A stretch of DNA of 64,000 bases from Trichoplax adhaerens (Eukaryota; Animalia; Placozoa), in the NCBI RefSeq assembly GCF_000150275.1, contig NW_002060962.1, forward strand, positions 372,001 to 436,000, read 5' to 3'. Each line of letters opens with the position of its first letter. The first letter of the stretch is position 1. The position numbers and the translations under genes are program-made. The notes under the pieces are model-generated. The model was not told where the DNA came from and searched no databases. It saw only the letters and a list, made by a program, of their open reading frames with translations. Below, piece by piece: positions 8,571-64,000 of the stretch.

Positions 8571-10569
8571 TTAAAATTTAGTTATGGTCTGACTTTTACG
8601 ACGAGATAACATAACAGCAAGTATAACTGTTGTCAACATGAAGACACCACACAATACGCTCAATGCAACAGTAGCGATAAATAAACGTTGTGAGATAACT
8701 TGAGATAAGGCAGTCTCAGATGAGATCGTATTCTGCTCAGTCGAAATAAATGAAGCAGTAATCGGCCTGTTTGTGGAGTCATTTGTAGGGTAATTTGTAG
8801 GTTTACTTGTAGAGCATGGGCGTGAATTTGCTGCAAGAGTAGGCAGGTATTTGTTCCAAAATTCCAATGCAGCTGGTTTGTAATCATTGCCAGCAGTCGT
8901 GGAATTGGAAATCATGATGTATCCTTTCTTGATCAAGTCATACTGTGGCCATTGTGGCGAAGTTAATAGATCATTAGGGTTTCTAAATATTTAAAAGAAA
9001 AATAAGAAAAAATTTAATAAATCGTACTTAATGAATTCAATTGCTATATCAAACCTAAGGGATTATCGATATAGCTCACCCTGTCTTGATGAAATTTGCC
9101 CACATACGCATGACTTTCTTGCTAACAGTTTGATCAATCCCAACAAATTTTTCCGGATACGAACTAGGTGGATTAATAGGATATCCAAACACATAAGAAA
9201 TTTCTGAAGCGTGAGTAGCACCGTAATATTCTGGAAAGTAGATGGAATTAGCTGGACGTCGATTAAAAACATAAAAATAAGTCGGCAATCCTTGCTTAAC
9301 ATATTGATTTGCGCATCGTATAGTTGGCGCTAAAAATACAGCATCAGTATTAGCTATACCCATCTGTTCTCGGTTAGCTATTGGTGAGGTAATATTATGC
9401 CAATCGCTGTATTTATATATAATAGCATTAACTGCATTTTGACCAAAGCTTCCATAAGATGCTTGGGCTAGTTGTTTAAAAGTATTTCGGTCTATGCCAT
9501 GTGGTAATCCGTTAAAACTATTGAAGGAAAGCGTTCCATCATCTTTAGTTATACCTGTTAAAACTTTTATCTTCTTATTAAACGAGTTATTATTCAATAA
9601 GGTAACCGGATTATCTGGCAGTAATACCATATCGACAACTGGTTTAAAGGCAAAAAAGCTCGCTTTTAAGAGTATTAATTGAGCATTGAGTAACTGTTCA
9701 GTTGATAATTCCTTAATACATGTAGAACTAAGCTGGGTGGAACTTCGACTACAATTCGTTACTTGCGCTAACAGATTAAACTGTGCTTGAACTTGCAATA
9801 GCGTATAGCTTCCAATATCTAATAGTAATGGACCACTTTGTATGATTACTGCACGATAATATGGAAAGCTACTGGGCATGATAGTATGGTAAGCCACAGA
9901 GAATGCGCCAGCAGAATTACCAGCAATCGTTACTCTTTTTGGATCGCCACCAAATCGTTGAATATTTTTAGCTACCCATTTTAGAGCTAATTGCTGATCC
10001 AAGAGACCATTATTAGCCGCAAATTCTCGTTGCGTTCCACTTTCACCACTTGACATAAATCCAAAAATGCCTAACCTGTAATTTAATGTTACAACAACAA
10101 TATTCTCCGAAGCGGCTAGAGTTTGGCCTTGCCACCATGCCCCAGAACCTACAATTAATCGACCACCATGAATCCAGACCAGGACAGAGAGATTGCCATC
10201 AACACTAGGCTCTGGCGTAAACACATTTAAATATAGGCAGTCTTCATTAATTTGAGATGATGAATCTTGTTGATCTAGCCAAGATATAGGTGTCTTTTGC
10301 GGGCAAGATGCTGAATATTGGCTAGCATTTTTAACACCAGTCCAATTCATACGCAATTCGTTTGGTGGTTGAAATCGCCTTTCATTAATAGGGGGCATAG
10401 CATAAGGTATGCCCCGATATATATAAATATCTTGTCCATATAAATTTACCATTGTTCCAATAACTTGTCCACGATCGGTGTTAACAACGATATTACTTAA
10501 AGTAAAATTCGGCCAAAATAATACCAAAAAGAATGAAAAAATAAAATAATGGATAGCAAAAAGTCTCAT
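8571..10569 (-). CDS. Membrane-anchored type-B carboxylesterase 1 (exons 10569-9080, 8982-8571; ~633 aa)
   Basis: Signal peptide, GIPYA, SCPQ..EDCLYLN, WIHGGR, NYRLG, GNSAG, TKDDG, GATHASE. Phase-2 intron at KTG|NP. Exon 2 gives WPQY, FWNKYLP, S/T stalk, TM and tail RRKSQTITKF. Confidence 0.9.
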
Positions 10570-15368: not shown

Positions 15369-16340
15369 TCATTTTAGACCTGTTAACTCTTCACTGATAT
15401 CCCAGAGTTTGTTCCCTGCTTCCTCATCGAGAGCGTGATCTTGTAATTTTTTAATCTGACAGTCCACAAAGTACTGTCCAGTAATTCTTTCAACTTCCTC
15501 TGAAACAGCAAGGTGTATCGTCGTTTGGGCACCTTCATAACTTGATTTGAAAAATATAAATGCAATGGGGTAAATGACCAGCCTGGCCCAAAAATACTTT
15601 AAAATATTTACACCTCGCCATATTTCAGTTCTAACAGCTCCAGGATGTAAAGCGTTTACCGTAACATGGGTGTCCTTTAATTTTTTGGCCAGTGAACGTG
15701 TAAATAATATGTTAGCTAATTTGCTTTGAGAATAGACATTAAAATTGTTAAAATTTTTCTCGTTTTGGATATCATCAAAATTGATTGATTTTACAAAAGC
15801 ATAGACCGAAGAGGCAACATTAACAATCCTACTTGAAGCGCTTTCCTTAATTTTAGGGAGTAAAAGGTTGGTGAGTAGGAAATGACCAAAATGGTTGACA
15901 CCCATGATCATTTCCAGCCCATCCTCAGTCAATTTTCTATCGCAAGCTAGTCCAGCGTTATTAACCAATATATCAACGCTTTTTTCATTGGTTATAATCT
16001 CCTGAGTAAACTTGCGAATGGATTTAAATGAGGCTAGATTAAGATGCATATAGATAACGTTGTTGTTACCAGTAGCGCGGCGAATATCTTCCATGGCAGC
16101 TTCACCTCGGGATTGATCTCTGCAGGCTAAAATAACGCGACCACCACGTCGAGCAAAATCTTGAGCAGCTTCTCTCCCAATACCACAATTGGCACCAGTG
16201 ACAATGACAACTTTGCCTTCCAGGCTGGCTCGGCTACGACATACTCCACCAGCGTAATACCTTTTAACGACATATAAACCCGTAGCAAGTGATACTGCAA
16301 CAGCAGTCCAAATTTGATGGCCAGACAACGATATCTCCAT
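15369..16340 (-). CDS. Retinol dehydrogenase 11/12/13/14-like short-chain dehydrogenase/reductase, intronless, 323 aa
   Basis: N-terminal hydrophobic anchor, TGANCGIG cofactor motif, DILVNNAG, NHFGHFLLTNLLL, YSQSK catalytic motif, ALHPGAVRT, GAQT, LWDISEEL. Confidence 0.92.
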   Translation of the reverse strand: MEISLSGHQIWTAVAVSLATGLYVVKRYYAGGVCRSRASLEGKVVIVTGANCGIGREAAQDFARRGGRVILACRDQSRGEAAMEDIRRATGNNNVIYMHLNLASFKSIRKFTQEIITNEKSVDILVNNAGLACDRKLTEDGLEMIMGVNHFGHFLLTNLLLPKIKESASSRIVNVASSVYAFVKSINFDDIQNEKNFNNFNVYSQSKLANILFTRSLAKKLKDTHVTVNALHPGAVRTEIWRGVNILKYFWARLVIYPIAFIFFKSSYEGAQTTIHLAVSEEVERITGQYFVDCQIKKLQDHALDEEAGNKLWDISEELTGLK

Positions 16341-19955: not shown

Positions 19956-22268
19956 TTAATTTTTATGGCTACCACCACCCCGACAATACGTAAAACACAA
20001 AATAAAGATAAGGAGAAGCAGAGCAGCACTAACACCAATCATAACAAATGCTACAACTCTAAAGGTAGATTCTTGATTTACAGTTCCATTTGTAGTGAAC
20101 ATCATCGTTGGCTGAAATGTAACTGAAGTGGTGATGTCGAAAGGGGGTCCAAATTGAGGTGTCATATATTGATTGAAAAAGGCGATCTTATTACGTTTAT
20201 AATTCGTAACAGCTTTCATTGATTGAAGACTAATATTTAAGCAATTGGGATTGCTAGAATTATACTGAGGCCAAGTCACTTTCGATGTGGAAGGATCTCT
20301 GACAATAGAGTAATTGTAAGAATATGTTATAGAAACAGTTTATTGTACATCTTTTAAATTCAGTACTCTACACGTAATTTATTCGACAGATTCTAAGTAG
20401 GCTATATTGTAAGAGGGCAGTATTATAAGGAAAGAGGGAAGCAGTAATTCTGTATTATGGTGTAAATAAAATGCTAGCAACATATCCTTTTTTCAAATAT
20501 TCTATTTATGTATACAAGATAGTGGTGGACTACCTTTGGAGACTGCCTTTTATTAAACTGACCGTTGTAGATTTAGGCTGTATCTACGGCATGATCTTGT
20601 TTTGGTAGTGTATTTTATTTTGTCGCTGACATTTACTATTATTACTTTAAACCTTAAATTATAATTTACTTTTATTTATTTTATGTCTACCTTATTGTAT
20701 ACTCTTTTAACGCATAAATACAGCTTGATCTTGTTGCATACTGTAGCATTATTCGCATCTAGTCATAATTAGAGTGGGAGTGTTGAAAGTTTCAGACCAT
20801 TAAAGAAAACTTACCCTGTATGAATAAAATTTCCCCACATCTTCATGGAATCTCTACTTAGTTGCGCTTCAGCAGTAGTAAAATTAGTTAGATAATAAGC
20901 AGGTTTTTGGACTGGGTAGCCGTAAAAATATGGTACATCCATACTATGAGTTACACCCATATAAGCTGGCAAATATATATCTTGCTGTGTATGATAAGTC
21001 CAAACATAATTATATGTTGGGGCATGTTTAGAATATTTTTGGGCCATGAAATCAGAAGTTGAAAGAAATAGAGCATCATTGGATAGTTCGCCTAACTTCA
21101 TTCTATTAACGGTTGGCGAGTCGATATTAGTATAATCAGTATATCTATTAATAACGGAAGCTCTAGCCGATGGAGGATATTCCCTAAACCAATTACTGAC
21201 ATAACCCAAGAATACTTGTCTAGTGACTAATGGAGGAATAAAAGAGTAACCGTCTTGTAAAGTTGTTCCGATCAAAAGTCGGCCTTTAAAAAAGCGACCA
21301 TCCTGGAGTAATTTCCTAGGATTTTCATTAAGAAATCGACCATCGATGACAAGACCAAAATTTGCAGGATTTTCTCTTAACAACGCAAATTGAATTTGTA
21401 ACAGTATTGTAGAATTGTACTTATTGATGCATTGATAAATTGCACGGAGGTTGGAAGTATTACATTGACCTACTTGGCCAATTCTTAGAAAAGTAGCTCG
21501 TGCTTCTGCAACGGATCTACCGTCAAGGATAGTTCCGCTTTCCATGATTGCGTAGCGATATAATCCACTACTACTAGGCGCTACTAGATGTATTCCAACA
21601 GCGAATGAACCAGCAGAGAAACCAGCTAAAGTTACAGCATCCTTCTTACCGCCAAATTGCTCGATATTATTTTGTACCCATGCCATTGCTAGTTGCTGAT
21701 CTAAAAAGCCAAGGTTGGCTTGGATAGAACGGCTATTTGCATTGGCTTCTCCTGAAGTCGTGAAACCGAATATACCCAATCTGTAATTCATGGTAACTAC
21801 AACAATATCTTCCGTTACTGCTAATGTTTGCGGCTGCCAATTAGCACCACTTCCACCTATGTAGCCACCACCATGAATCCAAACCATGACGGATTTATTG
21901 CCAGCTATACTTGGCGCAGTAGTAAAGACATTCAAGTATAAGCAGTTTTCATTAATGATACTTTCTGGAGCTGTAAGTGGCGATCTGAAAACTGGAACAA
22001 ATTGAATACATGAACTGCTATACTTTGTGGCATTTAATACACCGGGCCATGAGGAATTTAACGGCCGAGATGGCTTAAAACGATTCACGCCGATGGGAGG
22101 TTCAGCAAAAGGAATTCCCAAATATTTATGTAAAGTCGTTTGACCAACCAGTTCCGTTGTGCCCCTAACAAGTCCTTTATCGGTGTTAACGATTATTTGA
22201 CCGATTGAATTCGATGTTAAAATTCCCAAAATAATAAAAATGGAGGCATGAAAACAGTAGTAAGCCAT
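19956..22268 (-). CDS. Membrane-anchored carboxylesterase 2 (exons 22268-20815, 20298-19956; ~598 aa)
   Basis: Signal peptide, WIHGGG, GFSAG, TLQDG, GVTHSMD; intron HTG|DP; TM VVAFVMIGVSAALLLLIFILCF. Confidence 0.9.
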
Positions 22269-25038: not shown

Positions 25039-27145
25039 CTACGCAGCATATTGCTCTTTGCCTTTGTTTAATTTGCAAAGTAGGATAATTACAATAAGCA
25101 ATAATAATCCAGTAACACCTGCTAAAACATACGTTGAAATCATATAGGTTGATTCCAATGAATTCGATACTGTAGAAGCCATTGTTGATTTGGAAGTTGG
25201 AAGTGGAGGTGTATTTGTATTTGTGAGTGTAGCAAGTTGGGGAAGATATTGATTCCAAAAGGCGAATGGCTTACTATAGTAATTCTTTGCAATTGCCAAT
25301 TTAGGTGCAATCCACATGTAGTCTTTGCTGGTTTCTCTATATCTTGGCCAAGCTGGTGAAGAGCTTAAATCTGACGGATTTCTAAATTATCGTAGTAAAG
25401 GGAGTTAACTATTTCGTGGTTGACCTTGTATCATTATATATATCATTATACATTGTATAACAGTCTAGCTAGCTCTAGATATTAATTAATAAACAAAATT
25501 TAATTCATGCTTAATAATTTTGTCTGCCTTAGTTATTACCAAGTTGTAATGTAAGACTTATAAATTATTAATTGTCGCAATTCTTAATCTAGTTTACAAC
25601 CGTATGCGGGTATTTACACATATATAGCAATTGCTGAAAGACTACTTACCCTTGACGAATAAAGTTACCCCAGTATGCCATAACCTGTCGGCATACTTGT
25701 CGATCGGTATCATCAAATTTGTCTGGAAAATTTGCAGGTGGATCTAATGGATAGCCAAAAACATATGGGATCTCTATAGTATGCACTGCTTTAGCAAATG
25801 AAGGCATCGCGGTTCCTGCAGTGCGATGAGCAAATATGTAGGTATAGGTTGGTACATATCGAGAAAGCGCATCTGCATAATTTTCGTTAGGTACACTAAA
25901 GCGATAATCATTGAGCATATCGCCATACTGATCCCTATTAATGCTTGGTGAGCTAACATTGGCCCAGTTAGTATACTGATATTGGATAGAAAGTTTTACA
26001 CGTTGATTTGCTGCTGGAAAATTACCATTGACATAATTTTTAAACTGATTTTGTGAAAGTCCTTGAGATATATTTGGCATAAGTAATAAGAAAAAATAGC
26101 CATCATTCAACATCGTGCCTATCATGATGTCGGCTTTATTAAACTTTCCTGAAATTATAGCTTTGTAAGATGATTCTGGTAGTATATCGCCATCAACAAT
26201 GGGTGAATATGGATTAGTTCCAAGGAATCTCAATTGAAGTTGTACCAATTGCTGGGCTGGTAGGGTTCTTAGACAATTTACAGTCTCTGTTGTGATGTTT
26301 TTGTAACATCTAGCTACCGTGCTATACTGTACAAAGAAATTTTTAGCATCAGATAGTGTGAACTCGGTCGTCAATTTAGCTTTCTGATAAGATGGGAAAT
26401 CTCCAAAAATACCACTTTGTATGATAGCGCGGCTAAATAATCCTTTGCTAGATGGCATAACCAGGTGATTGGAAACAGCAACCGCTCCAGCTGAGTTACC
26501 TGCTATTGTAATTTGATCTTTATTACCTCCGAAATTTTCGATATTCTCTCTAACCCATTTCAAGGCCAAATTTTGATCTTGTAAAGCTAGATTTGCTGGA
26601 ATAGTCCTTTGATTGGCATCCTTTTCACCTGACGTCATGAAACCAAAGATTCCAAGTCGATAATTTATTGTAACAACAACGATATTTTCGTTAGCAGATA
26701 AGATTTGTCCTTGCCACCATGCGCCAGTTCCATAAAGGAATCCACCACCATGTATCCATACGAGTACTGACATATTCCCGGCTTTGCTAGGGTTAGGCGT
26801 AAAAATATTAAGGTAAAGGCAATCTTCACTGACTTGTATTTTATGCGAATTTTGACTTAAAGGGCCTACGAGATTCGGTTGAGAACAATCTTTTTGATAT
26901 TCAGTAGCATTTAGAACACTAGACCATTGCTCTTTGGGTACTGGCGGCTTAAATCGTAGCTGACCTACGGGAGGCTGAGCGTAAGGAATGCCGAGATAGG
27001 CAAACTGATCAGTACCATTAGTATTTACTATCTTACCACTAACTGAACCAGCTGTAGTAGAAACGATTAGTTGAGCTTTAGAATAAGGTAATAATGCAAT
27101 AGTTAATATTACAATACAGCTTGCGGTAAATCTTTCCAAAGTCAT
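25039..27145 (-). CDS. Membrane-anchored carboxylesterase 3 (exons 27145-25650, 25381-25039; ~612 aa)
   Basis: SEDCLYLN, WIHGGG, GNSAG, MLNDG, KAVHTIE; intron RQG|NP; TM YVLAGVTGLLLLIVIILLC. Confidence 0.9.
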
Positions 27146-30390: not shown

Positions 30391-32452
30391 TTAGACCAAC
30401 ACTTCTTTACCTCGTCGACAGCGCATAGCAAGTAAGATAACCACAATGATAAATAAAGCTGCACTCACTCCAATCAAGGCGTAAGTAGCAACCTTGAAAG
30501 TCGAACTCTGTGTAACAGAGCCAGAGGGAGTAGTTACGGATTGAGTCGGAGGTTGAGTGCTAGCGGTAGGATTATTAGCTAACGTAAATTTTACATTTAA
30601 CAAATTATTAAAGAAAGCAATTTGATTACGCTTGTAATTGGTTACAGGATTATAGCCTTTGGCTGTAATAGTCAAGTAGTAAGTATTGGTATTTGTGTAT
30701 TCTGGCCAAGAAATCCTTGTAGTGGATGGATCCCTTAAGATTTAAGTAAAACAGTCGAAGTAACTCTTAGTTAGATATCTCAAGGTTCTAATACTGATGT
30801 AACTCTACTTGGACGATTTAATTTCTATTCATCGAGTTTTAAATAATCTGAACTGTATACTAGTATAGTTATATTTTATGTACAGCATCACTGAAGTCGA
30901 TCAACTACTGAGTTTTTCTTTTAAACACTACAAGATATTAATCATTCTAGCTGTAAGGTAGCAGGATTACATTGTCTAGTTCTTACCCAGTGCGTATAAA
31001 ACTTCCCCACATAGCCATCATATCTTTACTCAAATCAATTTCTGCTGAAGTAAAATTTGATAAAAAGCCGGAAGGTTTATTAACTGGATAGCCAAAGACG
31101 TAGGGTAATTCTGCACCATGACTCACACCAGTGTTAGGCATTAAATAAGCTGATTGATTTGTTCGATGAGAGAAAACATAGGTATAGGTAGGAGAATAAA
31201 TAGAATGATATCCAGCAACGAAATCCGCTGGTGCAACGAAGAGTGAATCGGTAGATAATTCTCTTAGCATATGCAAATTACTTGTTAGAGAGTTGATGTC
31301 ATTATAGTTTGTATATCTGCTAATAATAACATCTTGACCTAAATCATTATATATTCTATTAAACCAGTATTTTATAAAGCCTAAATAAGCTGGCCTAGTT
31401 ACTTGAGGAGGTACGTTTACGTAGCCATCTTGAGCTGCAATTCCCATTAGTAGGTTGCCTTTCTTAAATCGACCTGCTGCCCAAGCTTTTCTAGGATTCT
31501 CTACAATTAATTTACCGTCTACCGTAACACTAAAGAATCCGAAATCTTGAAGCAACATTGAAGAGGATGCTTTTAAAATTATTGCCACACTTAAACTACG
31601 TACACACTGAGTCACAGTAGCAACAGTAGTGCCATTACATCCTGCTTGTTTACCAAACTTCAGGAAAGCTTGACGAGCTTCTGCCATGGATTTGTAGGTA
31701 TGACTATCGAATACGGCTCCACTATGCATAATAGCATAACGAAATAATCCGTAACTGCTAGGTGCTAATACGTGAATACCTACAGAGTACGCACCAGCTG
31801 AGAATCCAGCAATAGTAACTGCTTCTTTATTACCACCAAAGTTTTCAATATTATCTTGTACCCACTTTAAAGCCATTTGTTGATCGAGTATTCCTAAGTT
31901 AGGTTGAATAGCATTATTACCGGGATTATCTTCACCAGAAGTTAGGAAACCAAACGCACCCAATCTGTAGTTCATGGAAACGACAACGATACCTTCTTTA
32001 GCTGCTAGTGTTTGCATCTTCCAACCAGCTCCAGTACCAACAATAAAACCGCCACCATGAATCCATACTAGAACGGACATGTTAGCAACAGCGACTGGTT
32101 TTGTAGTAAAAACGTTAATATATAAGCAATCTTCATTGATTTGATGTTCTGGTGTATTAGGTTGTGTTCCACCAACAGGTGTAAATTGAGGGCAAGAATT
32201 TTTATATTGGCTTCCGTTTAAAACGCCAGACCAGGCCGATGTTAACGCTTTCGGTGGCATAAAGCGTAGTGAACCGATTGGAGGTTGAACGTAAGGAATG
32301 CCCAAATAAGAATGCACTGTTGTTCCATCAATAATATCTGACTTTCCACTGATGAGGCCATTATCTGTTCTAACAGTGATTTGGCCGGAATTATTAGGCA
32401 CGAATAATGTTAAAACTAATGCTAAAAGAATCCATGAAAGATGTACTGCCAT
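30391..32452 (-). CDS. Membrane-anchored carboxylesterase 4 (exons 32452-30987, 30733-30391; ~602 aa)
   Basis: WIHGGG, GFSAG, AAQDG, GVSHGAE; intron RTG|DP (AAG acceptor); TM and tail RCRRGKEVLV. Confidence 0.9.
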
Positions 32453-34792: not shown

Positions 34793-35139
34793 GTTCGTCT
34801 ATTCAAACACAACACTAGGGTTATTTTCAAGGGAAGACAGTGGTACTATCGCTCGTTATCCTTCGTGTACTTAGTTATTGGCGTACATTACATTACTTGT
34901 ATTTTTTTTATACTTTACTGTACAACATTATAAGTACTGTTGGTTATTGACAAGATAACCAAAAATAGAAGGTATTTTTATAGTGTGAACTATTGCATCT
35001 TTAGATAAGATGATCGGCTTGTGCCACTAGTACGATGAGCAAATATATAGTTACATGTCGGCACATGTCAATAGAGAGGAGGTCACGATTACGGTTTAAT
35101 ATTGATATTGAAAAAATTTATTTATTTTGTAAACCTTAT

Positions 35140-35965: not shown

Positions 35966-37814
35966 CTAACGTAAATTTTTGTTTAACAAATTATTAAAGA
36001 AAGCAATTTGATTACGCTTGTAATTGGTTACAGGATTATAGCCTTTGGCTGTAATAGTCAAGTAGTAAGTACTGGTACTTGTGTATTCTGGCCAAGAAAT
36101 CCTTGTAGTGGATGGATCCCTTAAGATTTAAGTAAAACAGTCGAAGTAACTATTAGTTATATAACATATAAGTTGTAAAATTGATATAACTGCATTTTGG
36201 ACGATTTAATTTCTATTCATCGAGTTTTAAATAATCTGAATTGTATACTAATGTACTGCAGTAATTTCTTTACAGTATAACTGAAGTCGATCAACTACTG
36301 AGTTTTTCTTTTAAACACTACAAGATATTAATCATTCTAGTTATAAGATGGAAAATTACATGATCCAGTACTTACCCAGTGCGTATAAAATTTCCCCACA
36401 TAGCCATCATATCTTTACTCAAATCAATTTCTGCAGAACTAAAATTTGATAAAAAGCCGAAAGGCTTATTGACTGGATAGCCAAAGATGTAGGGTAGTTC
36501 TACGCCATGAGTCGCACCATTCTTAGGTTTAAAATAGGCTGATTGATTTGTTCGATGAGAGAAAACATAGGTATAAGTAGGTGAATAAGCAGAATGATGT
36601 CCGGCAACGAAATCAGCGGGTGCAAGGAAGAGTGAATCAGTAGTTAATTCCGCTAACATGAGCCAATTACTTGTTAGAGAATTGATGTTTTCTTTGTAAT
36701 TTGTGTATCGGTTGATAGTAACATCTTGTCCTAAATCATTATATACTCCAGTAAGCGAGGCTTTTATAAGGCCTACAAACACTGGTCTATTTACATAAGA
36801 AGGTATGAGTGAGTAGCCATCTTGAGCTGAAGTTCCTATTAGTAGATTGGCTTTCTTAAATCGACCTGCTGCCCAAGCTTTTCTAGGATTCTCTGCAATT
36901 AATTTACCGTCTACGGTAATACCAAAAAATCCGCCATTCGTTAACAATAATGAAGCGGATGCTTTTAAAATTGCTGCCACACTTAAACTACGTACACACT
37001 GAGTCACAGCAGCAATAGTAGTGCCATTACATCCTGCTTGTTTGCCAAACTTCAGGAAAGCTTGACGAGCTTCTGCCATGGAATTATAGATAAAGCCATC
37101 GAGCATGGCTCCACTTTGCATAATAGTATAACGATATAGATCGTAGCTACTAGGCATTATTGAGTGAATTCCTACGGAGAATGAACCAGCTGAGAACCCA
37201 GCAACAGTAACCGCTTCTTTATTACCGCCAAAGTTTTCAATATTGTCTTGTACCCACCTTAAAGCCATTTGTTGGTCGAGTATTCCTAAATTAGGTTGAA
37301 TAGCATCATTACCGGGATTATCTTCACCAGATGTCAGGAAACCCAAGGCACCCAATCTGTAGTTCATGGAGACAATAACGATACCTTCTTTAGCTGCTAG
37401 TGTTTGCATCTTCCAAAAAGATCCACTACCACTAATGAAACCGCCTCCATGAATCCATACCAGAACGGACATATTAGCAGTAACGACTGGTCTTGTAGTG
37501 AAAACGTTAACATGTAAGCAATCTTCATTCAAATTAACACTTAGGCGTTGAGGGCAAGAACTTTTATATCGGCTTGCGTTTAAAACGCCAGACCAAGCGG
37601 ATGTTAAAGCTTTCGGTGGCATAAAGCGTAATGGGCCGATTGGAGGTTGAACGTAAGGAATGCCCAAATAGGAATGAACTGTTGTTCCATCAATTATCTC
37701 TGAGTTTCCTCTAATGAGACCTTTATCTGTTCTAACAATGATTTGGCCGGAACTATTAGGCACAAATAATATTAAAACTAGTGCTGAAAGAATCCATGAA
37801 AGGTGTACTGCCAT
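35966..37814 (-). CDS. Carboxylesterase 5, recent paralog of copy 4; as assembled it is truncated before the TM (exons 37814-36376, 36119-35966; ~530 aa). An out-of-frame TM/tail remnant continues to 35766
   Basis: Intact GFSAG, SAQDG and GATHGVE. Exon 2 reads ...FFNNLLNKNLR* because it is 1 nt shorter than copy 4 (AACAAAAATTTACG vs AATGTAAAATTTACG). Confidence 0.8.
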
Positions 37815-39766: not shown

Positions 39767-41879
39767 TTATACTAGTTTAGCTCTATGCATTTTGCAAAAC
39801 AAAACGGCAACTATTATTAATAATACTCCAGATATTCCAGCCAGAACAAATGTGGCAATCATGTATGTAGATTCCGAGGAATGGGATTCTTGCAGAGTAG
39901 TGATATTAGTTGGAGTCATTGTAGAATGAGTAGCTTGAATAGAAAGTTGAGGAAGGTACTGATTCCAAAAGGCTGCTTGTGTTGCAAAAAAATTATTTTT
40001 AACTTGGAAATTAGGAGCAATCCATAAGTACTTTTTTGTGTCTTGTGTATACTCCGGCCATGTGATGGGAGAACTTAAATCTGTTGGATTTCTATGGAAA
40101 AGAATAATAAACCAGAGAAATAAGTTAAACATTAATAAGAATAGAGTGTTAAAACTGACTTTCGCCAATTTATATTCCTTGTTGGCCATACTAGCAAACT
40201 GAACATTTCCCATATATAAATGCTTAATATATTTGCAGCTAATACACATTCTGTAAATGACAAAATTACGCTATAAATAACTATAATTTATCTATTACTG
40301 ATATTGCCTTTGTTAGTGATAGTATAATTACAGTAGTTTAAACTATCTTTACTTACCCATTCCGGACAAAATTACCCCAATACGACATCATATGTCTGCT
40401 TAATTCTTGTTCTTCGGCGTTAAATGTTGTCGGAAATCCGGCTGGATTATCGACAGGATAACCGAAAACATAAGGTACTTCCATAGTATGAGTTATCTTT
40501 AGATAAGCTGGTCGGTACGTCCCACTAGTACGATGAGCAAATATATAGTTAAAAGTCGGTACATATCGAGAAAATTGATCTGCATAATACTCGTTAGGTA
40601 TAGCAAAGACGAAATCGTTAAATAATTCTCCATATTGATCTCGATTCGATATCGGCGAATTAAAATTAGACCAATTTGTATACTGATATTGTATCGATAA
40701 TTTTACACGTTGACTTGCAAACGGAAAGGCGTTGTTAGTAATAGCTATGAAACCTTGACGTGGTATTCCTTGTGCAATACTTCCGGGATTAGGTAAACCA
40801 AGAAGACCGAAATAGCCATCATTTAATGTAGTACCCATCATAATACTAACTTTATGAAATCTTCCCGCTGGTATAGCTGTATGTAAGGCTTCTCGTATAG
40901 TACTGGCATCAGCAACGGGAAAGCTAAGAGCAATATTATTTGATCGTTGAACAATTTGGAGACTTATTAACTGCTGTACAGTTAATGCTTGTAGACATTT
41001 GACGATTAGTGATGTTGTATTTCTTGTACAGTTAGCTGACGAAACAAATCGTTGATAAGATGTCTTGGCTACAGCAAGTGAAATTGGAAACGCGATACGT
41101 GATTGAATGAATGGTAGTGTAGCTCCGTAAGGTGCACTTTGAGATATTACACCTCTAAATAATCCCTTACTAGAAGGCATAACTACGTGGTATATAGCAG
41201 ATCCGCCGCCTGCTGAATTTCCAGCTAACGTAATAAAATCTGGGTTACCTCCAAAATTTTCAATATTATCTTTAACCCATTGTAATGCTAAACTTTGATC
41301 TTTTAAACCATTATTAGCTAGTATAGCTCTTTTAGCAATGTCTTCTTCGCCGGATGTCATAAAACCTAGAATACCTATTCGATAGTTAATAGTAACTACG
41401 ACGATACCTTCATTGGCAGCTAAGATTTGACCAGACCATCGCGCCCCTGAACCGCTATCGTATCCACCGCCATGGATATACACCAATACAGACATATTGC
41501 CAGCACTAGAAGGATTGGAAGTAAATATATTTAGGTATAAACAGTCTTCGCTAGTTTTACTGGCTAGTGAGTTGGGTTCAATATAAAAGTTTATCGGAAG
41601 TCTTTGCGGACAACTGTATTGATATTGAGTAGTATTTAAGACGCCATTCCAAGATTTGACTGGTACAGGCGGTTTAAATCGTAATTCATTAATAGGTGGT
41701 TGAGCGTATGGAATACCGCGATAGGTGAATTGAGTTCGACCGTTCGTTATAATCGTTTTCCCACTAACTAAACCGTTTTTCGTAGGAATAATAAGTTGTG
41801 CATTCGAAAATGGCATTACAATTGCCAACACTATAATAAAGCATGCTAAGATTTGAAATATATGATGTTTTAGAGCCAT
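39767..41879 (-). CDS. Membrane-anchored carboxylesterase 6 (exons 41879-40357, 40091-39767; ~615 aa)
   Basis: YIHGGG, GNSAG, TLNDG, KITHTME; intron RNG|NP; TM FVLAGISGVLLIIVAVLFC. Confidence 0.9.
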
Positions 41880-46100: not shown

Positions 46101-46230
46101 GAATGATACATCCATCTTGCTAAAAGTTACTAGGTATGAGTGTGTAAGCAAGGATAGGCATCAATTTTGGCTCATGTTAGTAATAACAAACGAAATACCT
46201 TTAATCGATACAATTAGTCGAGAAGTTCTA

Positions 46231-47130
46231 TTAAATATTGTATAAATAGAATTCGTAAACATTAAATAATCTGTGACGTTGCATTTTGGTGCAATCAGCT
46301 ACCGAACTAAATCGTTGAAAAACAATCTTAGCTCTAGCTAATGTCTGTGATAAATACGTTCTCGATTTAATGTATGGTAGAAGTATTCCATAAGGTCCAC
46401 TTTGAGAGATTACGCTTCTAAATAATCCTTTACTGGAAGGCATCACTAGATAACAGATAGCAGATGAACCTCCTGCGGAATTTCCAGCTATCGTAATAAA
46501 GTTTGGGTTACCTCCAAAACTTTCGATATTTTCCTTTACCCATTGTTATGCTAAACTATGATTTTGTAGACTAAGATTCGCTGGAATATTTCTTTGATTA
46601 CTACCTTCTTCGCCGGATGACATAAAACTTAAAACATTTATTCGATAATTAATAGTAACTACGACGATACCTTAATTAGCAGCTAATATTTGACCAGGCC
46701 ATTATGCTCCTGAACGATTGCATATCCGCCACCGAGGATGAAGACTAACACGGACATATTCCTAGCTATAGAAGGATTCGAGATAAAGATATTTAGAGAT
46801 AGACAATCTTCATTAATTCGACTCCTAAGTGATTTTGGATCAGTAAAAAGGACTGGAAGTTACTAGAGGCAACTGTATTGATATTCTGTAGCGTTTAAGA
46901 CGCCTCTCCAAGATTCTACTGGCACTGGTGGTTTAAATCGTAATTGATTAATGGGTAGTTGGGCGCAAGGAATACCAAGATAAGTGAATTGAGTTAAATC
47001 ACTAGTTAGAACTGTTTCCTCGCAATATAGCCGTTCTTTGTAGGAATGATAAGATGAGCATTAGAAATAGGGCATACTAAACCCACAATTGCAATAAAAG
47101 ATGCCAGCAATGGAGATATTTTAGGGCCAT
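46231..47130 (-). pseudogene. Carboxylesterase pseudogene of the copy 6/7 subfamily; 5' half only
   Basis: Recognisable fragments LGIPCAQLPINQLRFKPPVPV, QYSCL**LPV, NEDCL, SLA*QWVK and GNSAGG...MPSSKGLF, with frameshifts and in-frame stops. No 3' half or exon 2 was found. Confidence 0.88.
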
Positions 47131-48035: not shown

Positions 48036-50153
48036 TTACTTAACATATATACATTTTGCTCTATTAACTTTACAAAATAAAATCATAGCTATTATTAATA
48101 GAATTCCAGATATTCCTGATAGAGCAAATGTAGCAATCATGTATGCAGATTCCGAAGAATGCGGCTTCTCTACTGTGGAAGCATTTGTCGGAGCTATTGT
48201 AGAATAAATAGTTTGTGAAGCGAGTTGAGGAAGATACTGATTCCAAAAGGCTGAATTTGCGGCAAGATAATTACTTTTAATTTGGAAATTGGGAGCAATC
48301 CACAAGTACTGCCTTGTATCTTGTGTATATTTAGGCCACATGATAGGAGAACGTAGGTCTGTCGGATTTCTGTAGAAAATAATGTAAGAAGTTAATAGAA
48401 TTTCTCTAATGTAATTTTAGTTAACGGTGCTGTATTGGAAGATGATAATTTGCATAAATTTATAGGCTATGCTGGTTATACTCAAAGAATAAATGTTTTA
48501 GGAATAGAACGTTATATAAACTAACAATTTCTTTCAATTTTAAAAGCAATGCCTAAAGGCTTAGCTGAATTATTTATATTTTATTACACAGAAGCAAGCA
48601 ACTAACTCCATAACAACGCAGCTCCAGCTGTAAGTTACTCACCCTTCTCGGATAAAACTACCCCAATACGAAAGAACATGTCTGCATAAGGTTACTTCTT
48701 CAGCATTAAATGTTGATGGATATTCGGATGGCTTATCAAGAGGATAACCTAACATATATGGTATTTCCATGGTATGTGCTACTTTTACGTAAGATGGCTG
48801 CCATGTACCACTAGTACGATGAGCAAATATATATTTATATGTAGGTACAAATCGAGACAACTGATCGGCATAATATATATTAGGAATAGCAAAGACGAAG
48901 TCGTTGAATAATTCTCCATATTGATCTCGATTTGATATCGGTGAATTGGCATTACTCCAATTAGTATATCGATACTGTATAGATAATTTTACGCGTTGGC
49001 TTGCAAAGGGAAAAGAATTATTAGTAGTAGATATAAAATTTTGGCGCGGTATTCCAGTTACAGCATTAGGCATAGAAGGAAGCCTGAAATAGCCATCATT
49101 TAACGTTGTACCCAACATAATATTAACTTTATGAAATCTTCCTGCTGGTATAGCTGTATGTAAAGCTTCTTGTACATTGTTACCATCAGCAACAGGAGAT
49201 GTTAAAATACGATTTCTTGGTCGTAAAGTACTTTGAATATTTAATAACTGTTGTACAGATAAAGTCTTTAAGCACTCGACGATCTTTGATGTTGTATTTT
49301 TCGTACAGTTCGCTAATGAACTAAATTGCTGAAAAGATATCTTAGCTCTGGCCAAAGTATCCGGCATTGATGTACCCGATTTAATGTATGATGGTATGGT
49401 TCCATAAGGTCCACTTTGAAGGATTGCACCTCTGAATAATCCTTTACTAGAAGGCATCACTAGATGATACATAGCGGATAAGCCACCTGCTGAATTTCCA
49501 GCTATGGTAATAAAATCTGGGTTACCTCCGAAATTTTCAATATTATCTTTTACCCACTGCAATGCTAAACTTTGATCTAGCAGGCCAAGATTAGCTTGAA
49601 TAGCTCTTCGAGCACTATCTTCTTCACCTGATGTCATGAAACCTAGTACACCTACTCGATAATTAATAGTAACTACAACGATATTTTCATGAGCAGCTAA
49701 AATTTGACCTTGCCATTGTGATCCTGAACCAAGCACATATCCACCGCCATGGATGTAAACTAACACTGACATATTTGCAACATTAGAAGGATTAGAGGTA
49801 AATATATTTAGATATAGACAGTCTTCATTAATTTGACTACTTGGTGATTTGGAATCAGTAAAACGTATTGGGAGTCGTTGAGGGCAACTAGACTGATATT
49901 GTGTAACATTTAAGACGCCTTTCCAAGACTTTACCGGTACAGGTGGTTCAAATCGTAATTGATTAATAGGAGGTTGAGCATAAGGAATACCAAGGTAGGC
50001 GAATTGAGTTAAGCTATTCGTTTTAATGGTTGTTCCCGTAACAAAACCGTAATTAGTAGGAATAATAAGTTGAGCATTAGAAATGGGAGACACTATGGCT
50101 ATTATTATGGCGAAGGATATCAAAATATTAGATACAAAAAATTGTACAGCCAT
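48036..50153 (-). CDS. Membrane-anchored carboxylesterase 7 (exons 50153-48643, 48369-48036; ~614 aa)
   Basis: YIHGGG, GNSAG, TLNDG, KVAHTME; intron REG|NP; TM FALSGISGILLIIAMILFC. Confidence 0.9.
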
Positions 50154-52909: not shown

Positions 52910-55900
52910 TCAATTAAAGATAACTGTAGTTGTTCTTCGCCTGATCTTTCGAGCAAAGATAAGCAATCCAACCGTTGTTATAACTGCAACACAGCTTAAG
53001 GCAATAATGATGATACTGTAGAAGGACAGTTGGCCTTGATTATTCTGATCCATATCATCAGTTTTTATTGGTACTTGACTCGGAACTGAAGCTCGTGAAT
53101 GTTCATAATCAATTTGTTTCTCCAAATAGCCGTTCCAAAAATTGTTACCATTAGCATTATGTAATGTGATTATTCTCGATGGGGAATTGACACAATAATA
53201 TTGCTTGGTTGATTTTTTATATCGTGGCCAAATGAGATGGTTGCCCATTTCAGCGTTAGGCGATCTAGTTCAAGAATAAATGCAAACTTTTAAAACGATA
53301 CATGATACTGTAATTTAATAGCTAAAAACTGTTTCATAGCATTTTATAACTATAGCTATTAATTGATGATTAGAATACTGCAACAATCTTATCTTATCTC
53401 ACTGTAGTAACTTGTGATCAAGTAGATTTATAGTTATCGTATTTAATACCTTAGATCTTTCAAATGCTATTTAAATTTAAAGCTAATACCGCCAAATTTG
53501 ATTTATTAACAACATAATTCGTAACAGTTTAAATTTTAAATAATGACTGTCTTATGACAAATCTATTATTTCTACCGCAATGATTCTAACTCGAAGTTGG
53601 TTTGTAATCTTTATATTTTTTTATAGTTTTTACTTTATATAGTAGATTTACATTCGAGTGATTCTCCCGGAATTTAATGTAGATCGATTTACTTTATAGG
53701 CGTATGGGTTTTAAGTGGTCATTTTACATTCATTGCTTCATTAAGTATTCGTAACCGTCTGTTTTAAATGTTCTCTATGTACTACTAGTATAAATTTTGT
53801 AAATAGTTTTCCTTTTAAACTATTTTATTGTACTATTGAAGAGCAACGCCTAGTTTCTACTCGTAAATCTTAAATTACAGTATTTGTTTTATAAATTGTT
53901 TATAAATGTGAAGAGTAGAATTTTTAGCAGATTTTCCATTTCAAATCTTTCTTTTCGTCATTTGAGAGCAAAATTAAACTTGCTAAAGTATAATAACTGA
54001 CTGAGGATGGATGTTGCAACTGGTTGTAGAGATCGATGAGACTTTAGACTTAAAAAATTAGAGGTAGACGCTTGATAATGTAAATTATATTTAACTCACT
54101 CATCAGCGAATCTATAGGCTACTATATCTTTTAGCTGTTTAACTATCGAGCATATATATATCGAATATGAATGCGTACAAAATTTTGCGCTCGTTACTCT
54201 CACGTGATTAATCCTTTATTAATTTTCAATAGAAAATGTGAACCTTCATCGTCTATAAATCCTAATTACTACCGAAGAATATTAAGATCGCGTATACATG
54301 TCATCCAAAAAAATATGCTCGATAGACTTGTTGGTTGATTTCTAGAATTGTTTCAGAATAGATCTTGCGTGCATCAATTCGTTATGTAGCTGAAAGAGGA
54401 TCATCCATCTCCTTTATTTACAGCCCTTAAGCTAATTATTCGTTTATAAAAGAGCATCTAGCTGCGAAATGATATCATTGTACTCAATATTCTAGTATCC
54501 TAAGAACTCCTCTTTGATATTGATGATGAACGTTAAAACGAAATATAAGATCAATTTACTTTGGATAGATTGAAAAGCACCTAAGAGAAGTTCATTCAGC
54601 AATTAAGGTTACATTACCATTGCACTACTCTATGAAAAATCAATATACTACCTACCCATGATGGATAAAATTGCCCCATAATGACATTACTTCAAGGCTA
54701 ACTTGACGATCAGTCATAGTATAGGCGGTAGCATAGTAATTGGGTTTGGCGACGGGATAACCGAAAACATATGGTATCTCCATTGTATTACTAACGCCTA
54801 ACTGTGAAGGATAATATGGATCGGGATTGCTGCCACGATAGGAATATAAGTAGACGAAAGTACTGGTAGATGAATCTCTAGAATAAATGTTGGCGATATA
54901 CTCTGTTGGTGCGGCGTATAAGCTATCGGTTATTAATTTGTCAGCTTGTCGTAAATTGAATATTGGCGATGAAACATTTTGCCAGTTAGTATATTCATGA
55001 ATGATTGCTCGTCGTATTGCGTGATTGAATTCATCAAATAAAGTATCGATTAAGAGTAGGAAGATATCACGATGTATGCCTTGATTTTGATGTGGTAATT
55101 GTTGTATCAATTTAGCGCTATCATTTAAGTTATAACCAACGATTAAATTGACTTTCTTAAAATTGCCTTGATCAAGTAGAATTCTTGGGTGATCTCGTAT
55201 CAGTACACCATCGACTACATATTTAAAAAATCGCCAATATTGTTGGGTTAAAACTTTTTGACCTTGGAAAAGTTTCCGAGTGCTTAAGCGTTGTAAGCAA
55301 TTTACTTGTTGAGTAACGGTATGATTTTGACCCAGACATCCAACTTCTGCAACAAATAGACGAAAGATAGATCGAGCTTTATGGATATTAGACTCAATAG
55401 TATGTACCATACGTACATTGCCACTCTGTAGAATTAAATTATGGATATAATTATAACTTGATGGGATAAGGGTATGCAATTGAGCAGCAGTAGCACCTAA
55501 GCCATCGCCACCGACTGTTACTGCTCTAGGATTGCCACCAAAGTGATCAATATTGTCTTGTACCCAGCGTAGAGCAACTTGTTGATCAAGTAGAGCAATA
55601 TTAGCTGGAATTTGACGACCATGACTTTTTAATTCAGCTGTTGTTAGAAAACCGAAAACTCCTAAACGATAATTGAAGGTAACAACGACTACATTAGCTT
55701 GACTTGCTAACGTTGTGGCCATCCATCGACTACCACTTCCTTCTGTCGACGATGTTCCGTCAATCCAAACAAAAACAGGCAATTTATCTGTCTTATTTAA
55801 TGATGGTGTAAAAACATTTAAATACAGGCAGTCTTCATGGATATTAGCTTGAGCTGTAGTTGGATTAGTCCACGGAATTGGTGTTGGTTGAATACAGGAT

Positions 55901-56160
55901 GGCTTATATAAACGGGCATCGTAGCGTCGAATTCTTCCACTACTTTGAGGAATAGGTTGTGGTGCTTGAAAGCGGTATTTCCCTAATGGAGGTATAGCAT
56001 AAGGTAAACCAAGAAAGAATGATACCTGCTTACCATTGATTATTCCACTTCTACCGATAACATCGCCATAATTTGTCGTGACTATAACGCTAGAAAATGA
56101 TTGTGTTATTAACGAGTTAATAACGATGGAGAAGAGGATAAAAAAACTCGTTAGTTTCAT
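52910..56160 (-). CDS. Catalytically inactive carboxylesterase-fold membrane protein, neuroligin/CLAM-like (exons 56160-54656, 53264-52910; ~619 aa)
   Basis: Fold motifs are intact (GLPYA, EDCLYLNVF, NYRLG, DQQVALRWVQDNI..FGGNP), but the elbow is GDGLG, the oxyanion loop is WIDGTSS and the His motif is GVSNTME. TM followed by RKIRRRTTTVIFN. Confidence 0.88.
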
Positions 56161-58086: not shown

Positions 58087-58112
58087 ATATATATATATAT
58101 ATATATATATAT
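58087..58112. repeat. (AT)13 microsatellite
   Basis: Direct read of the sequence. Confidence 0.95.
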
Positions 58113-61107: not shown

Positions 61108-64000
61108 TCAAGCAACAGCTGTTTTAGATTTTTTTAATTTGATGATTAGAATAATGATAATTATAATTAACACTCCAATTATGCCAGCTAGTGCAAATGT
61201 ACAAATCATAAAGATTGTTTTCATCATTTGAATATCACTACATGACTGTGCTTGAGTGGGATAGCTTGTATCGTGAGTGGTAGTTTGAGTTCGAGTTGGT
61301 ATATCAGAAGTAGAAAGTGATGATTCGCTAAAATCTATTGGAAAAGGTGACATACTTCCGCTCCCAGTCACATCATCGTCGAAAGTAGAAGTGCTGTTTT
61401 CTATGAGGATTATAGGGGAAGAAAGATTACTTGATTGCGTTGTGGTAAAATTAGGGCTGTTCGTTGACAGATTACTTGGCTGAGTTACAGTGGAACAAGG
61501 ACTAGATGTTCCGATCTGAAGTGGAATGTTAATTTGCGGAATCAATGTATTCCAAAATTCCACTCTATCAGCAATGTAGAAACTGCGTATTTCAGAGTTC
61601 ACAGTATTAATATAGCAATATAAACGGGTATCTGCTACATAGGGCCGCCAGTTGATAGTTGAAACTCTTGATATTGGAGATCTGTAATTACAATCATTGG
61701 TCTTAGATATTTATCGAGCATTGCCAAATGGTAAAAATTAATATTAACACAGTGATTATTTAGGTAAAAATTTTCTGTGCTAGCTCAGACATCTAAAATC
61801 CACTATTAATTCTAAAGAAACATTAAATTGTCGTTATGGTAATTAGCCATCAGAATTTCTGATGACCTAGGTGAGACTACGAAGCTGTAACTTAAACTTA
61901 TAGCGATAAAAACTATCAGTCAAGTAATACAATCATCCGACAAGATTCTACTAAATATACCGTTCGTCTATGTTATGAAATTTTAAATCAGAATTACTTT
62001 TTCCATCTACGAGACTGTTTTGTGTTCCTTGAGAAAAAATAGACAGAACTACTGGAGTGTTACATCAAGTTTGATCTATTTTTAGTAATTATATTTATAC
62101 AAAAAATGTATCCGAATAAGGACTACCGTGGAAAAATATTAAATCAAGTCAGATCGGACAAATATGGTAGACTAGAGAAAAAACCTATGTCCTAATAGTA
62201 TTTCAGAAGCTAGGCGCAGACTTTCTTGTTAAGTATACCTAACTAATGGAACTTTGATTTTTAGCATGCTAATCTATGATTTGGGCCGTTTTTCCTATTT
62301 AAACGTTGTCCTCGATAGTTTGATACGATTAAAATAATCATTGATAAGTATTACTAAATGGAACTAGATTACTTGATATATGAAGTAGATTGCAATTCAG
62401 TAACTGATTTGAGTAAAAAGTCATAGCAAATCATGATGTGCTTAATATTAATTCGAGAACTCTTTTTTGCTGCAATCATAGCATGTCAAAAATTTTGTAT
62501 ATATTCAGGTCGGTACATGAAGTATTGTACAGCTATACTGCTAATATCCTTAAAATTAACTTCAGGATAGGCTTTGTGGAATAAATGCCATTATAGAATT
62601 AAAGTTATGTCAGCTCTAGTTGTCGAACAGTATTCCATTACCTTCTTTTCTTCTGGAGTTTATGTAGCTATAAGAAATAGGTAGGGAAATTATGACGTGG
62701 TCTTTTCGACTATACAGCAAAGGTATGCCTAATTTTAATAGGGCGGGACGCATATTAACGAAATATAACAAAACTGGCTGATTTGGAAGTTACGTTACTG
62801 TATATGTTCTATGATTTTAGCTGCCTGATTACACGTACGATTGGCATGAATTGTATGTACTTATACCTATAAATTTAAATAGTTGTAAAGTACACTATTA
62901 TAAAACTCGAATTAATTTTTTCGAATATAGCAGCAGCAAAAATATTCAAAATTGTTTTTATATCATGGACTTTAAGTCACATTTACGTTCGTTACGAGGT
63001 CGCTATATTTGTATCTGATGTCATCATTAAGTGATATACGATAGCTACAAACATAATTTTAAACTGGTCATGATTGTACCGTAAATTTTGCATGCTGCAT
63101 GGATAGTTTAAAGAAATGTAATGATATATTTCTAGTATCTGATCTGTAAAAGGATATTTAAGGATGATTTTGGCAGTCATTTAAACTAGTAGTTAGAGAA
63201 GTTGTGCCCTTAAAGAAGGTCTGTGGTATGAATGCAGCAAAGCGCCATAATTTAATTTGGATATTTGCTTACTGAAGTTTATTTGCAGTATTTATCGTAA
63301 CCAACATCATCAATTCATCAGATTATGTTTAAAGTTATTGTTATGGTGACTTGTAACTTTTCAACACATAAATTTAATCGGATAAACTAAAATGATCAAT
63401 AAGAAGCTTTAAAACTTTAAATACAAATGGAATTTACGATACCAAATCTGCCTGTAAAGACCACTTTATAGTTTAAACTGTACATTGAATCCGGTAATGT
63501 TATAGCAAATAGGCAGTATGCGTTTCTTTATTAGAAATTATGACTAGCCCAATTGCATACAAATGAAGTTATTGAATAGCCTTATTACATTAATGACTTA
63601 CCTATCATAGATAAAACTTCCCCAAAGTGACATTAAATGCTTACTAATTCTTTCTTCATGTTCAGTATAATTTAATTTTAAGTTATTGGGTTTAAGTAAT
63701 GGATAACCGAATACATAGGGAATTTCCATAGAATGAGCCACGCCATAATAGCTTGGAAAATAAGTATCACTTTCAGTTCGGTAAGCAAAAACGTACATAT
63801 AAGTAGTAACATAACTAGAATAAAGATTCGCTGTTTCAACAATGGGTTCAGCATAGTAATAATCATTGTATAATTTCTCATATTCAGCACGATTACTAAA
63901 TAATGACGTTTTATTTGTCCAGTCTGTGTATTTATAGATCATGGCTGATAAAGTGACGTTATTGAAATTGGAAAATTGTGCGACTATATTAGTTTTAAAA
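61108..64000 (-). CDS. Carboxylesterase-family copy 9, 5'-partial (exon >64000-63602, exon 61681-61108) with a long S/T stalk
   Basis: YKYTDW, GVAHSMEIPYVFGYP, LWGSFIYDR|SP, FWNTLIP, a stalk of ~100 aa, TM FALAGIIGVLIIIIIILII and tail KLKKSKTAVA. Confidence 0.85.

Follow-up and report, generated by a model that had tools for sequence, protein, structure and literature searches.

The window analysed here, a 64,000-nucleotide (nt) stretch of the Trichoplax adhaerens contig NW_002060962.1 (C1395 below) with a GC content of 28-43%, holds nine carboxylesterase genes of the PF00135 (COesterase) family, A to I, all on the minus strand, together with one pseudogene fragment and one small remnant (Table 1). 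Eight of the genes were recognised as full open reading frames (ORFs) of 480-508 amino acids (aa) on the minus strand, which matched the PF00135 profile with E-values of 1e-110 to 1e-126 (369-421 bits). The ninth, gene I, was detected by tblastn with one array copy, as were the frameshifted fragment and the small relic; exon 1 of gene I is cut by the window end and runs on to 65100 in window numbering (C1395:437100). A protein search matched gene C to its public model at 100% identity. Profile and tblastn searches thus confirmed that the array is real, with the nine co-oriented genes and the pseudogene that an earlier note on this DNA had counted.

A two-exon plan with a separately encoded anchor

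In each gene, a phase-2 GT-AG intron separates a large exon 1 from exon 2. The 3' end of exon 1 reads GG^GT(A/G)AGT (^ marks the junction; the exceptions are AG^GTAAGT in gene I and GG^GTAGGT in H), with an in-frame stop inside the donor, and a polypyrimidine-AG acceptor follows 97-1920 nt downstream, the distance being 97-516 nt except in H (1391) and I (1920). Joining the exons in phase 2 restores a conserved G-[N/D/S]-P...W-P-x-Y...F-W-N motif, and exon 2 completes the esterase fold before encoding a Ser/Thr/Pro-rich linker, one transmembrane (TM) helix and a basic tail. Whole-protein domain and fold tests used public spliced models (P0005, P0010), and the exons were otherwise searched separately. 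The exon 1 ORF matches span PF00135 positions 2-472 and all end at position 472 of 515, and the public spliced model of gene A (P0010) spans positions 3-515 with 446.6 bits, a gain of 28 bits over the 418.1 bits of gene A exon 1 alone. A Pfam search with exon 2 alone gave no significant match, only weak ones to the stalk/TM regions of unrelated-domain type I proteins; the 43-position domain tail that it carries is too short to score by itself.

Comparison with related genes extended these observations. Paralog L, located beyond the window, is intronless, and one 619-codon frame reads through the same junction into linker, TM helix and tail. Public gene models, one for gene F and one for a Trichoplax sp. 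H2 homolog (P0008), include the TM helix as well. Furthermore, two environmental placozoan-like contigs with a GC content as here carry homologs 54% and 41% identical to gene C, both of which share the donor and the exon 2 plan and have closely similar tails, and an environmental placozoan-like relative of the D/E subclade ends in RCRRGKTVLV, against RCRRGKEVLV in D. Collectively, the sequence comparisons support a strong inference that exon 1 is spliced to exon 2. The plan proposed earlier, with signal peptide, esterase domain, S/T stalk, TM helix and short basic tail encoded in two exons, is borne out by the ORFs, the splice sites and the restored motif.

Every copy has a stop directly at the donor, so that a transcript retaining the intron would yield a defined product, and we considered whether exon 2 is unused, so that the genes encode soluble secreted esterases ending at the donor stop and the TM ORFs are relics. 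Such products would lack the last 43 PF00135 positions. Moreover, exon 2 ORFs are intact in eight of the nine copies and conserved in other placozoans, the intronless paralog has the same exon 2 content, and public gene models in two species splice exon 2 on; we therefore regard an unused exon 2 as very improbable.

The last-intron position is identical in annotated Actinia and Liolophura genes (...F-x-K-Y-G^(N/I)-P...; proteins mapped to loci), and vertebrate BCHE exon 2 ends at the same place. Because the position is common to sea-anemone and chiton genes, the intron is ancestral, and the Trichoplax plan is best described as the ancestral last intron retained with the other introns absent. 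The shared cnidarian and mollusc position ruled out the two-exon plan as a local novelty.

Table 1. Esterase genes, fragments and neighbouring features. Positions are in window numbering unless a contig is named; active-site columns come from the alignment described in the text.
Feature	Public model or description	Position (strand)	Exon 1	Intron	Exon 2	Elbow	Oxyanion	Acid	Histidine	Tail after TM
A	TRIADDRAFT_61104	8571..10569 (-)	9080-10569	8983-9079 (97 nt)	8571-8982	GNSAG	HGGR	Asp	His	RRKSQTITKF
B		19956..22268 (-)	20815-22268	20299-20814 (516 nt)	19956-20298	GFSAG	HGGG	Asp	His	RGGGSHKN
C	TRIADDRAFT_1836	25039..27145 (-)	25650-27145	25382-25649 (268 nt)	25039-25381	GNSAG	HGGG	Asp	His	KLNKGKEQYAA
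D		30391..32452 (-)	30987-32452	30734-30986 (253 nt)	30391-30733	GFSAG	HGGG	Asp	His	RCRRGKEVLV
Relic	3' end of esterase exon 1, residues ~430-465, two frames (tblastn)	34955..35067 (-)
E		35766..37814 (-)	36376-37814	36120-36375	from 36119	GFSAG	HGGG	Asp	His	
F	TRIADDRAFT_32073	39767..41879 (-)	40357-41879	40092-40356 (265 nt)	39767-40091	GNSAG	HGGG	Asp	His	KMHRAKLV
Pseudogene	F/G-like esterase residues ~38-282, two frames, several stops, 3' half gone	46285..47018 (-)
G	TRIADDRAFT_2392	48036..50153 (-)	48643-50153	48370-48642 (273 nt)	48036-48369	GNSAG	HGGG	Asp	His	KVNRAKCIYVK
H		52910..56160 (-)	54656-56160	53265-54655 (1391 nt)	52910-53264	GDGLG	DGTSS	Asp	Asn in place of His	RKIRRRTTTVIFN
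I		61108..64000 (-)	63602-64000 in window	61682-63601 (1920 nt)	61108-61681	GSSAG	HNGD	Asp	His	KLKKSKTAVA
SDR gene	single exon, 323 aa, PF00106 (adh_short) E 1.5e-39; between A and B	15369..16340 (-)
A-P	16 full-length esterase genes	C1395:380574-475540
J-P	seven further COesterase genes past window end	C1395:436001-475540
L	intronless paralog	C1395:452713-454569
Q, R, S and T	second cluster Q, R, S plus highly divergent T	C1414:12806400-12819877 and C1414:12590755-12592272
U	paralog of gene C	C1385:38603-40685
Weak match	PF00135 in three pieces, many stops	C1382:234940-236176

Predicted topology, active sites and relationships

At the N-termini, a hydrophobic core of 12 residues (mean hydropathy 2.3-3.6) precedes a small-residue site and then Q/I/V, and each exon 1 ectodomain has four to six N-x-S/T sequons. 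In copies with a locatable domain end, the linker measures 24-104 residues (50 in A, 104 in I) and is 44-56% Ser+Thr+Pro; the TM helix reaches a mean Kyte-Doolittle hydropathy of 2.5-3.2 over a 21-residue window, and the tail is 8-13 residues long with a net charge of +2 to +5. Because of the positive-inside rule and the glycosylation sequons, the typical product is predicted to be a type I membrane protein with a cleavable signal peptide, its catalytic domain lying outside the cell or in the lumen of the secretory/endolysosomal pathway.

An AlphaFold2 model of P0010 (gene A), built on a 31-sequence alignment, had a mean predicted local distance difference test score (pLDDT) of 89.3 and a predicted template modelling score (pTM) of 0.83, with a confident esterase domain, a low-confidence or disordered stretch at 554-585 and a helix at 574-632. 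Foldseek returned Torpedo AChE (E 6e-52, TM-score 0.89), BChE and neuroligin 4 as the top matches, with E-values of ~1e-50 and target TM-scores of ~0.89. Cysteines of two conserved disulfide pairs (C89, C111, C273 and C284 in gene A numbering) are invariant or nearly so in the same alignment. Membership of PF00135 thus rests both on a profile match over the whole domain, seen in spliced gene A, and on the cholinesterase-type alpha/beta-hydrolase fold of the model.

To read the active sites, we aligned the copies to BChE, AChE, a vertebrate carboxylesterase and a neuroligin. The Ser-Asp-His triad is kept in eight of the nine copies (A-G and I), as had been claimed for most of them, and the GGG oxyanion motif is fully kept in B-G. 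The Cys-loop is shorter than in cholinesterases, and no Trp was found at the aligned choline-binding position, although the loop alignment is uncertain; in A and H, a Trp lies 4-5 residues upstream of it. Ratios of nonsynonymous to synonymous divergence (dN/dS) between paralogs were 0.13-0.28 in five pairs other than D/E.

In a maximum-likelihood tree built by quick search from 70 sequences and 549 columns under LG+C20+F+G4 (CEST, CEL, gliotactin and neurotactin not in the tree), all 21 T. adhaerens copies grouped with eight environmental placozoan-like sequences in one clade, with a support of 99 in the Shimodaira-Hasegawa-like approximate likelihood ratio test (SH-aLRT). This clade lies outside the vertebrate carboxylesterase (99), neuroligin (100) and cnidarian (99) clades and outside the cholinesterases. 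The phylogeny that the earlier note had called for therefore upholds a lineage-specific family with respect to cholinesterases, vertebrate carboxylesterases and neuroligins. The backbone was unresolved, and the weakly supported sister (88) was a long-branched chiton protein, P0111 (Liolophura sinensis, GCA_032854445.2 CM072726.1), annotated as 'acetylcholinesterase-like', with 648 aa encoded over 38 kb in at least eight exons. A true cholinesterase reading was ruled out by the clade placement, the Cys-loop and the triad acid.

The AChE/BChE enzymes are nevertheless the best sequence and structure matches of the Trichoplax copies, at ~35% identity and a Foldseek TM-score of ~0.89, and they share with them both conserved disulfide pairs, an intron at F-x-x-x-G^N-P and a last exon that sets the anchoring mode. 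They differ in having Glu as the acid and Trp in the Cys-loop, where the Trichoplax copies have Asp and a shortened loop and fall outside the cholinesterase clade, and their third disulfide is absent in most Trichoplax copies. Anchoring differs as well, being by a glycosylphosphatidylinositol signal or a tryptophan-amphiphilic tail peptide in AChE/BChE and by an integral TM helix in Trichoplax. CEL, of the same family, has a Ser-Asp-His triad and an O-glycosylated Pro/Ser/Thr-rich C-terminal region and acts as a digestive lipid-ester hydrolase; it is soluble and secreted, whereas the Trichoplax copies have a TM anchor. Lactase-phlorizin hydrolase and other stalked brush-border hydrolases of the gut are digestive enzymes that a glycosylated stalk and a single TM helix fix to the membrane of the absorbing cell, and they release their products next to transporters. 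These vertebrate enzymes offer a functional analogy only, their folds being unrelated to the Trichoplax copies.

Enzymes of this fold with a TM anchor have been described in nematodes. The catalytically competent CEST proteins start with a signal peptide, and their esterase domain, a homolog of carboxylesterases and AChE, is joined by an unstructured linker to a C-terminal TM helix (PMC12931606). The Trichoplax copies are predicted to have this same layout, with an active-site esterase domain. P0111 likewise combines GHSAG, Ser-Glu-His, a C-terminal TM helix and a 16-residue basic tail, so active-looking TM-anchored members are also found in molluscs. The premise that active members of the family lack TM anchors therefore fails on both the nematode enzymes (PMC12931606) and the chiton protein.

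Copies E and H, the wider family and neighbouring sequence

Gene E is a recent duplicate of gene D. Compared with D, its exon 2 has lost 1 nt, and the resulting stop at 35966-35968 ends the protein directly behind the final fold helix, ahead of the linker and TM helix, so that the linker/TM/tail coding sequence (to 35766) is out of frame. Exon 1 of E has a Cys-loop deletion and keeps the triad, and D/E dN/dS is 0.47, versus 0.13-0.28 in the five other pairs. E may be either a new truncated soluble form or a young pseudogene. Two further features of this pair were observed. Exon 2 and the acceptor (30394-30760 versus 35769-36146) share 96% DNA identity, whereas the exon 1 proteins share only 79% (dS 0.25), a contrast suggestive of very uneven rates or of a recent gene conversion in the 3' part. 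The E stalk has also gained a 12-nt in-frame repeat.

In H, the catalytic Ser is replaced by Gly (GDGLG), the His by Asn, and the oxyanion GGG is lost. A protein search with H identified an ortholog, P0122, 67% identical, on a 3-kb contig of another sequencing run from another placozoan, and this ortholog carries H's Ser-to-Gly and His-to-Asn changes and the lost oxyanion motif. The same three changes in both proteins indicate that the loss of catalysis is older than the split of the two placozoan lineages, and the divergence between them (dN 0.227, dS 1.30, dN/dS 0.17) points to purifying selection since. Together with the intact triads of A-G and I and the deletion in E, these changes substantiated the claim that active, dead and soluble (truncated) states occur in one locus.

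We next weighed what H implies for the non-catalytic cholinesterase-like adhesion molecules (CLAMs). Neuroligins, gliotactin and other CLAMs are type I proteins in which an O-glycosylated stalk joins the esterase domain to a TM helix and tail, the layout predicted for the Trichoplax copies, and, like H, they have lost the catalytic Ser with the protein maintained by selection; the Ser is kept in eight of the nine Trichoplax copies, with Gly only in H. Neuroligin tails extend 55-157 residues past the TM helix in the fish and skate models sampled, of which the full-length ones end in TTRV, compared to 8-13 in Trichoplax, and neuroligins form their own clade (SH-aLRT 100) with no phylogenetic affinity to the Trichoplax copies. 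Forcing H together with the neuroligins cost 59.6 log-likelihood units and was rejected by the approximately unbiased (AU) test (p 0.0005); this constraint was named after the tree had been seen, though it follows from the hypothesis of the earlier note. Neuroligin orthology for H was thereby ruled out, by its position inside the placozoan clade and by the AU test. In agreement with a tree that places no placozoan copy with neuroligins, a review of wiring receptors lists neuroligin-like proteins in Cnidaria and not in Placozoa (PMC10084454). The neuroligin topology attributed to the array accordingly stands as a predicted type I layout and does not extend beyond architecture, given the short tails and the AU result.

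The whole family might serve adhesion or recognition in the manner of neuroligin or gliotactin, with the domains as binding modules and the triads vestigial, and the type I topology, the maintained non-catalytic H and the Foldseek match to neuroligin 4 are consistent with this. Eight of the nine copies keep Ser, Asp and His, however, seven are counted as keeping the GGG oxyanion motif, and they evolve under purifying selection; the short tails offer no neuroligin-type cytoplasmic domain, and H nests among placozoan enzymes. For the family as a whole, adhesion therefore seems quite unlikely, although for H alone such a reading may apply. Regarding the proposed transition from enzyme to adhesion molecule, the step from enzyme to non-enzyme is supported by H, whose maintained loss of catalysis is the best supported part of that idea, and the affinity to neuroligins is rejected. 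We tentatively raise the possibility, against which the odds still lie, that H and its ortholog represent a cholinesterase-like molecule for adhesion or recognition that evolved independently, born in an array of active digestive enzymes. If so, H, in a synapse-free animal, would bind some ligand, for example a surface molecule of prey or bacteria, a lipid, or a partner carried by adjacent cells, and together with the active, endoplasmic reticulum (ER)-signal and anchorless paralogs it would form a living series of steps toward neuroligin-type receptors.

A PF00135 profile search of the whole assembly gave 31 matches and a total of 21 full-length genes: 16 on C1395 (A-P, ~95 kb, one strand), four on C1414 and one on C1385. 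Seven of the 16 (J-P) lie past the window end on the same strand. Most family copies have an exon 2 with a TM helix. J ends in SDEL without a TM helix and has His replaced by Lys, M is also without a TM helix, and Q ends in KQEL without one; the TM tails of K (KPKRH), R and S fit KxKxx, and in T both Ser and His are replaced. To judge from these sequences, the family uses several anchoring or retention modes, all encoded after the same intron. Paralog U is 77% identical to gene C, with the two-exon plan, a near-identical tail and a dN/dS of 0.23, and is a dispersed recent duplicate. A weak match on C1382 represents either a copy in decay or a divergent family member with several exons.

The window also contains sequence unrelated to the array. 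A short-chain dehydrogenase/reductase (SDR) gene, which the earlier note did not mention, is not of the esterase family and interrupts the array on the same strand; its sequence matches in the PDB include an uncharacterised Mycobacterium SDR, protochlorophyllide reductases and FabG-type reductases. ORFs in window positions 1-8570 and 12751-13032 gave no Pfam match. The former region has short ORFs on both strands, with GC up to 0.43 at 4001-6000, and probably contains a multi-exon gene that an ORF listing cannot resolve.

Expression and proposed role

In the literature on Trichoplax esterases, cholinesterases and neuroligins, with gene identifiers sought in the main texts, we found no analysis of these genes, and esterases go unmentioned in a 2025 paper on the secretory cells of placozoans. 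Single-cell data were more informative. In the matching entries of PMC10580291 Table S3, Tadh_TriadG2392 (gene G) belongs to module Tadh.brown with a membership of 0.841 and Tadh_TriadG32073 (gene F) to Tadh.palevioletred3 with a membership of 0.673, and both modules are curated there as 'lipophil'. Among the matches listed in the same table, the COesterase genes TriadG32115, 52793, 1914 and 31975 fall in these two modules as well, and the module neighbours include a fatty-acid-binding protein (FABP), FIT2, CYP4, HMG-CoA reductase and epoxide hydrolase 2. Lipophil modules represent fatty-acid, cholesterol and amino-acid catabolism programmes (PMC10580291), and lipophils are ventral cells with large secretory granules that are released in feeding and lyse algae (PMC4558020). 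The expression check proposed for the locus was thereby answered for F and G, and the digestive or lipid-related role suggested at the outset gains plausibility from these two and the four other COesterase genes in the lipophil modules, as far as the matched entries go.

We favour, with a probability of roughly 0.6, the reading that the family is a placozoan-specific tandem expansion whose tethered enzymes hydrolyse lipid esters of lysed prey in lipophil cells. Their substrates would be carboxylic esters, most likely those of lipids from lysed prey, and they would act at the luminal face of lipophil granules and/or at the ventral surface after granule fusion, where the tether would keep them at the feeding interface rather than lost to sea water and divergence between paralogs would widen the substrate range. 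H, with catalysis gone and the protein kept by selection, would act as a non-enzymatic binding protein, and E has just lost its anchor. The anchor is encoded by a last exon of its own, downstream of an animal-wide conserved intron, and other family members in this genome illustrate how swapping this exon could yield a TM helix, a TM helix with KxKxx, xDEL or no anchor.

Several points weigh against prey-lipid hydrolysis by tethered enzymes. The window tails have no recognisable plasma-membrane or lysosomal sorting motif, and paralogs outside the window have ER-retrieval-type ends, so the destination of the family is not uniform. In A and I, activity may be lowered or altered by the variant oxyanion motifs (HGGR and HNGD, respectively). 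Of the nine window genes, only two have a documented module membership among the matches listed in Table S3. Moreover, nematode relatives of the same layout are biosynthetic acyltransferases of lysosome-related organelles and not digestive hydrolases.

The last point leads to a different function for the same layout. CEST enzymes are needed for modular ascaroside assembly in lysosome-related organelles (PMC12931606, PMC7641594), and, compared by description, C. elegans CEST-1.1, -2.2, -4 and -9.2 and P. pacificus UAR-1 resemble the Trichoplax copies in signal peptide, PF00135 domain with triad, linker and TM helix. Both families are large lineage-specific expansions, and the CEST catalytic domain is luminal (PMC12931606, PMC7641594). 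The Trichoplax copies could therefore be acyl-transfer enzymes in the membrane of acidic lysosome-related granules, where their serine triads would acylate small molecules to make secreted signalling or defensive metabolites, in which case the expansion would reflect chemical diversity rather than diet; the identical layout of C. elegans CEST, predicted in lysosome-related organelles (PMC12931606, PMC7641594), the large secretory granules of lipophils (PMC4558020) and the large tandem expansion on both sides fit this idea. CEST enzymes are assigned to the making of modular ascarosides and glucosides in gut organelles of this type, however, whereas the Trichoplax copies are tied to lipophil cells; the latter form their own placozoan clade with Asp as the triad acid, where CEST have Glu. 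Modular metabolites are not known from placozoans, and the co-expressed genes belong to lipid catabolism and transport and not to a biosynthetic pathway. We consider acyl transfer of this kind doubtful.

Alternatively, the enzymes might work inside the cell, detoxifying xenobiotics and lipid esters in the ER or endomembranes like vertebrate ER-retained carboxylesterases. The SDEL and KQEL ends of J and Q and the KxKxx tails of K, R and S, all outside the window, point in this direction, as do the cytochrome P450s and epoxide hydrolase 2 among the lipophil module entries seen in Table S3. Neither KKxx nor KxKxx fits any of the nine window tails, however, and O-glycosylated proteins of the surface or of granules, beyond the ER, typically have such mucin-like S/T/P linkers with N-x-S/T sites, which makes an intracellular role unlikely for these copies. 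Hydrolysis of prey lipid esters by tethered lipophil enzymes remains the reading we prefer.

Placozoans digest externally with very few cell types, and this family is a candidate lipid-ester hydrolase set of about 20 paralogs, mostly membrane-tethered, at least six of which are co-expressed with the lipophil programme in the matched entries of Table S3. As a phylum-specific family, it appears to widen the known theme of active and inactive membrane-anchored cholinesterase-fold proteins, without overturning current views or adding a new category. TM anchoring of active-site-intact cholinesterase-fold enzymes is not confined to nematodes, and the anchoring module is a last exon behind an intron common to placozoans, cnidarians and molluscs. 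In H, moreover, catalysis has been lost and the membrane protein retained, a step thus taken outside the neuroligin lineage.

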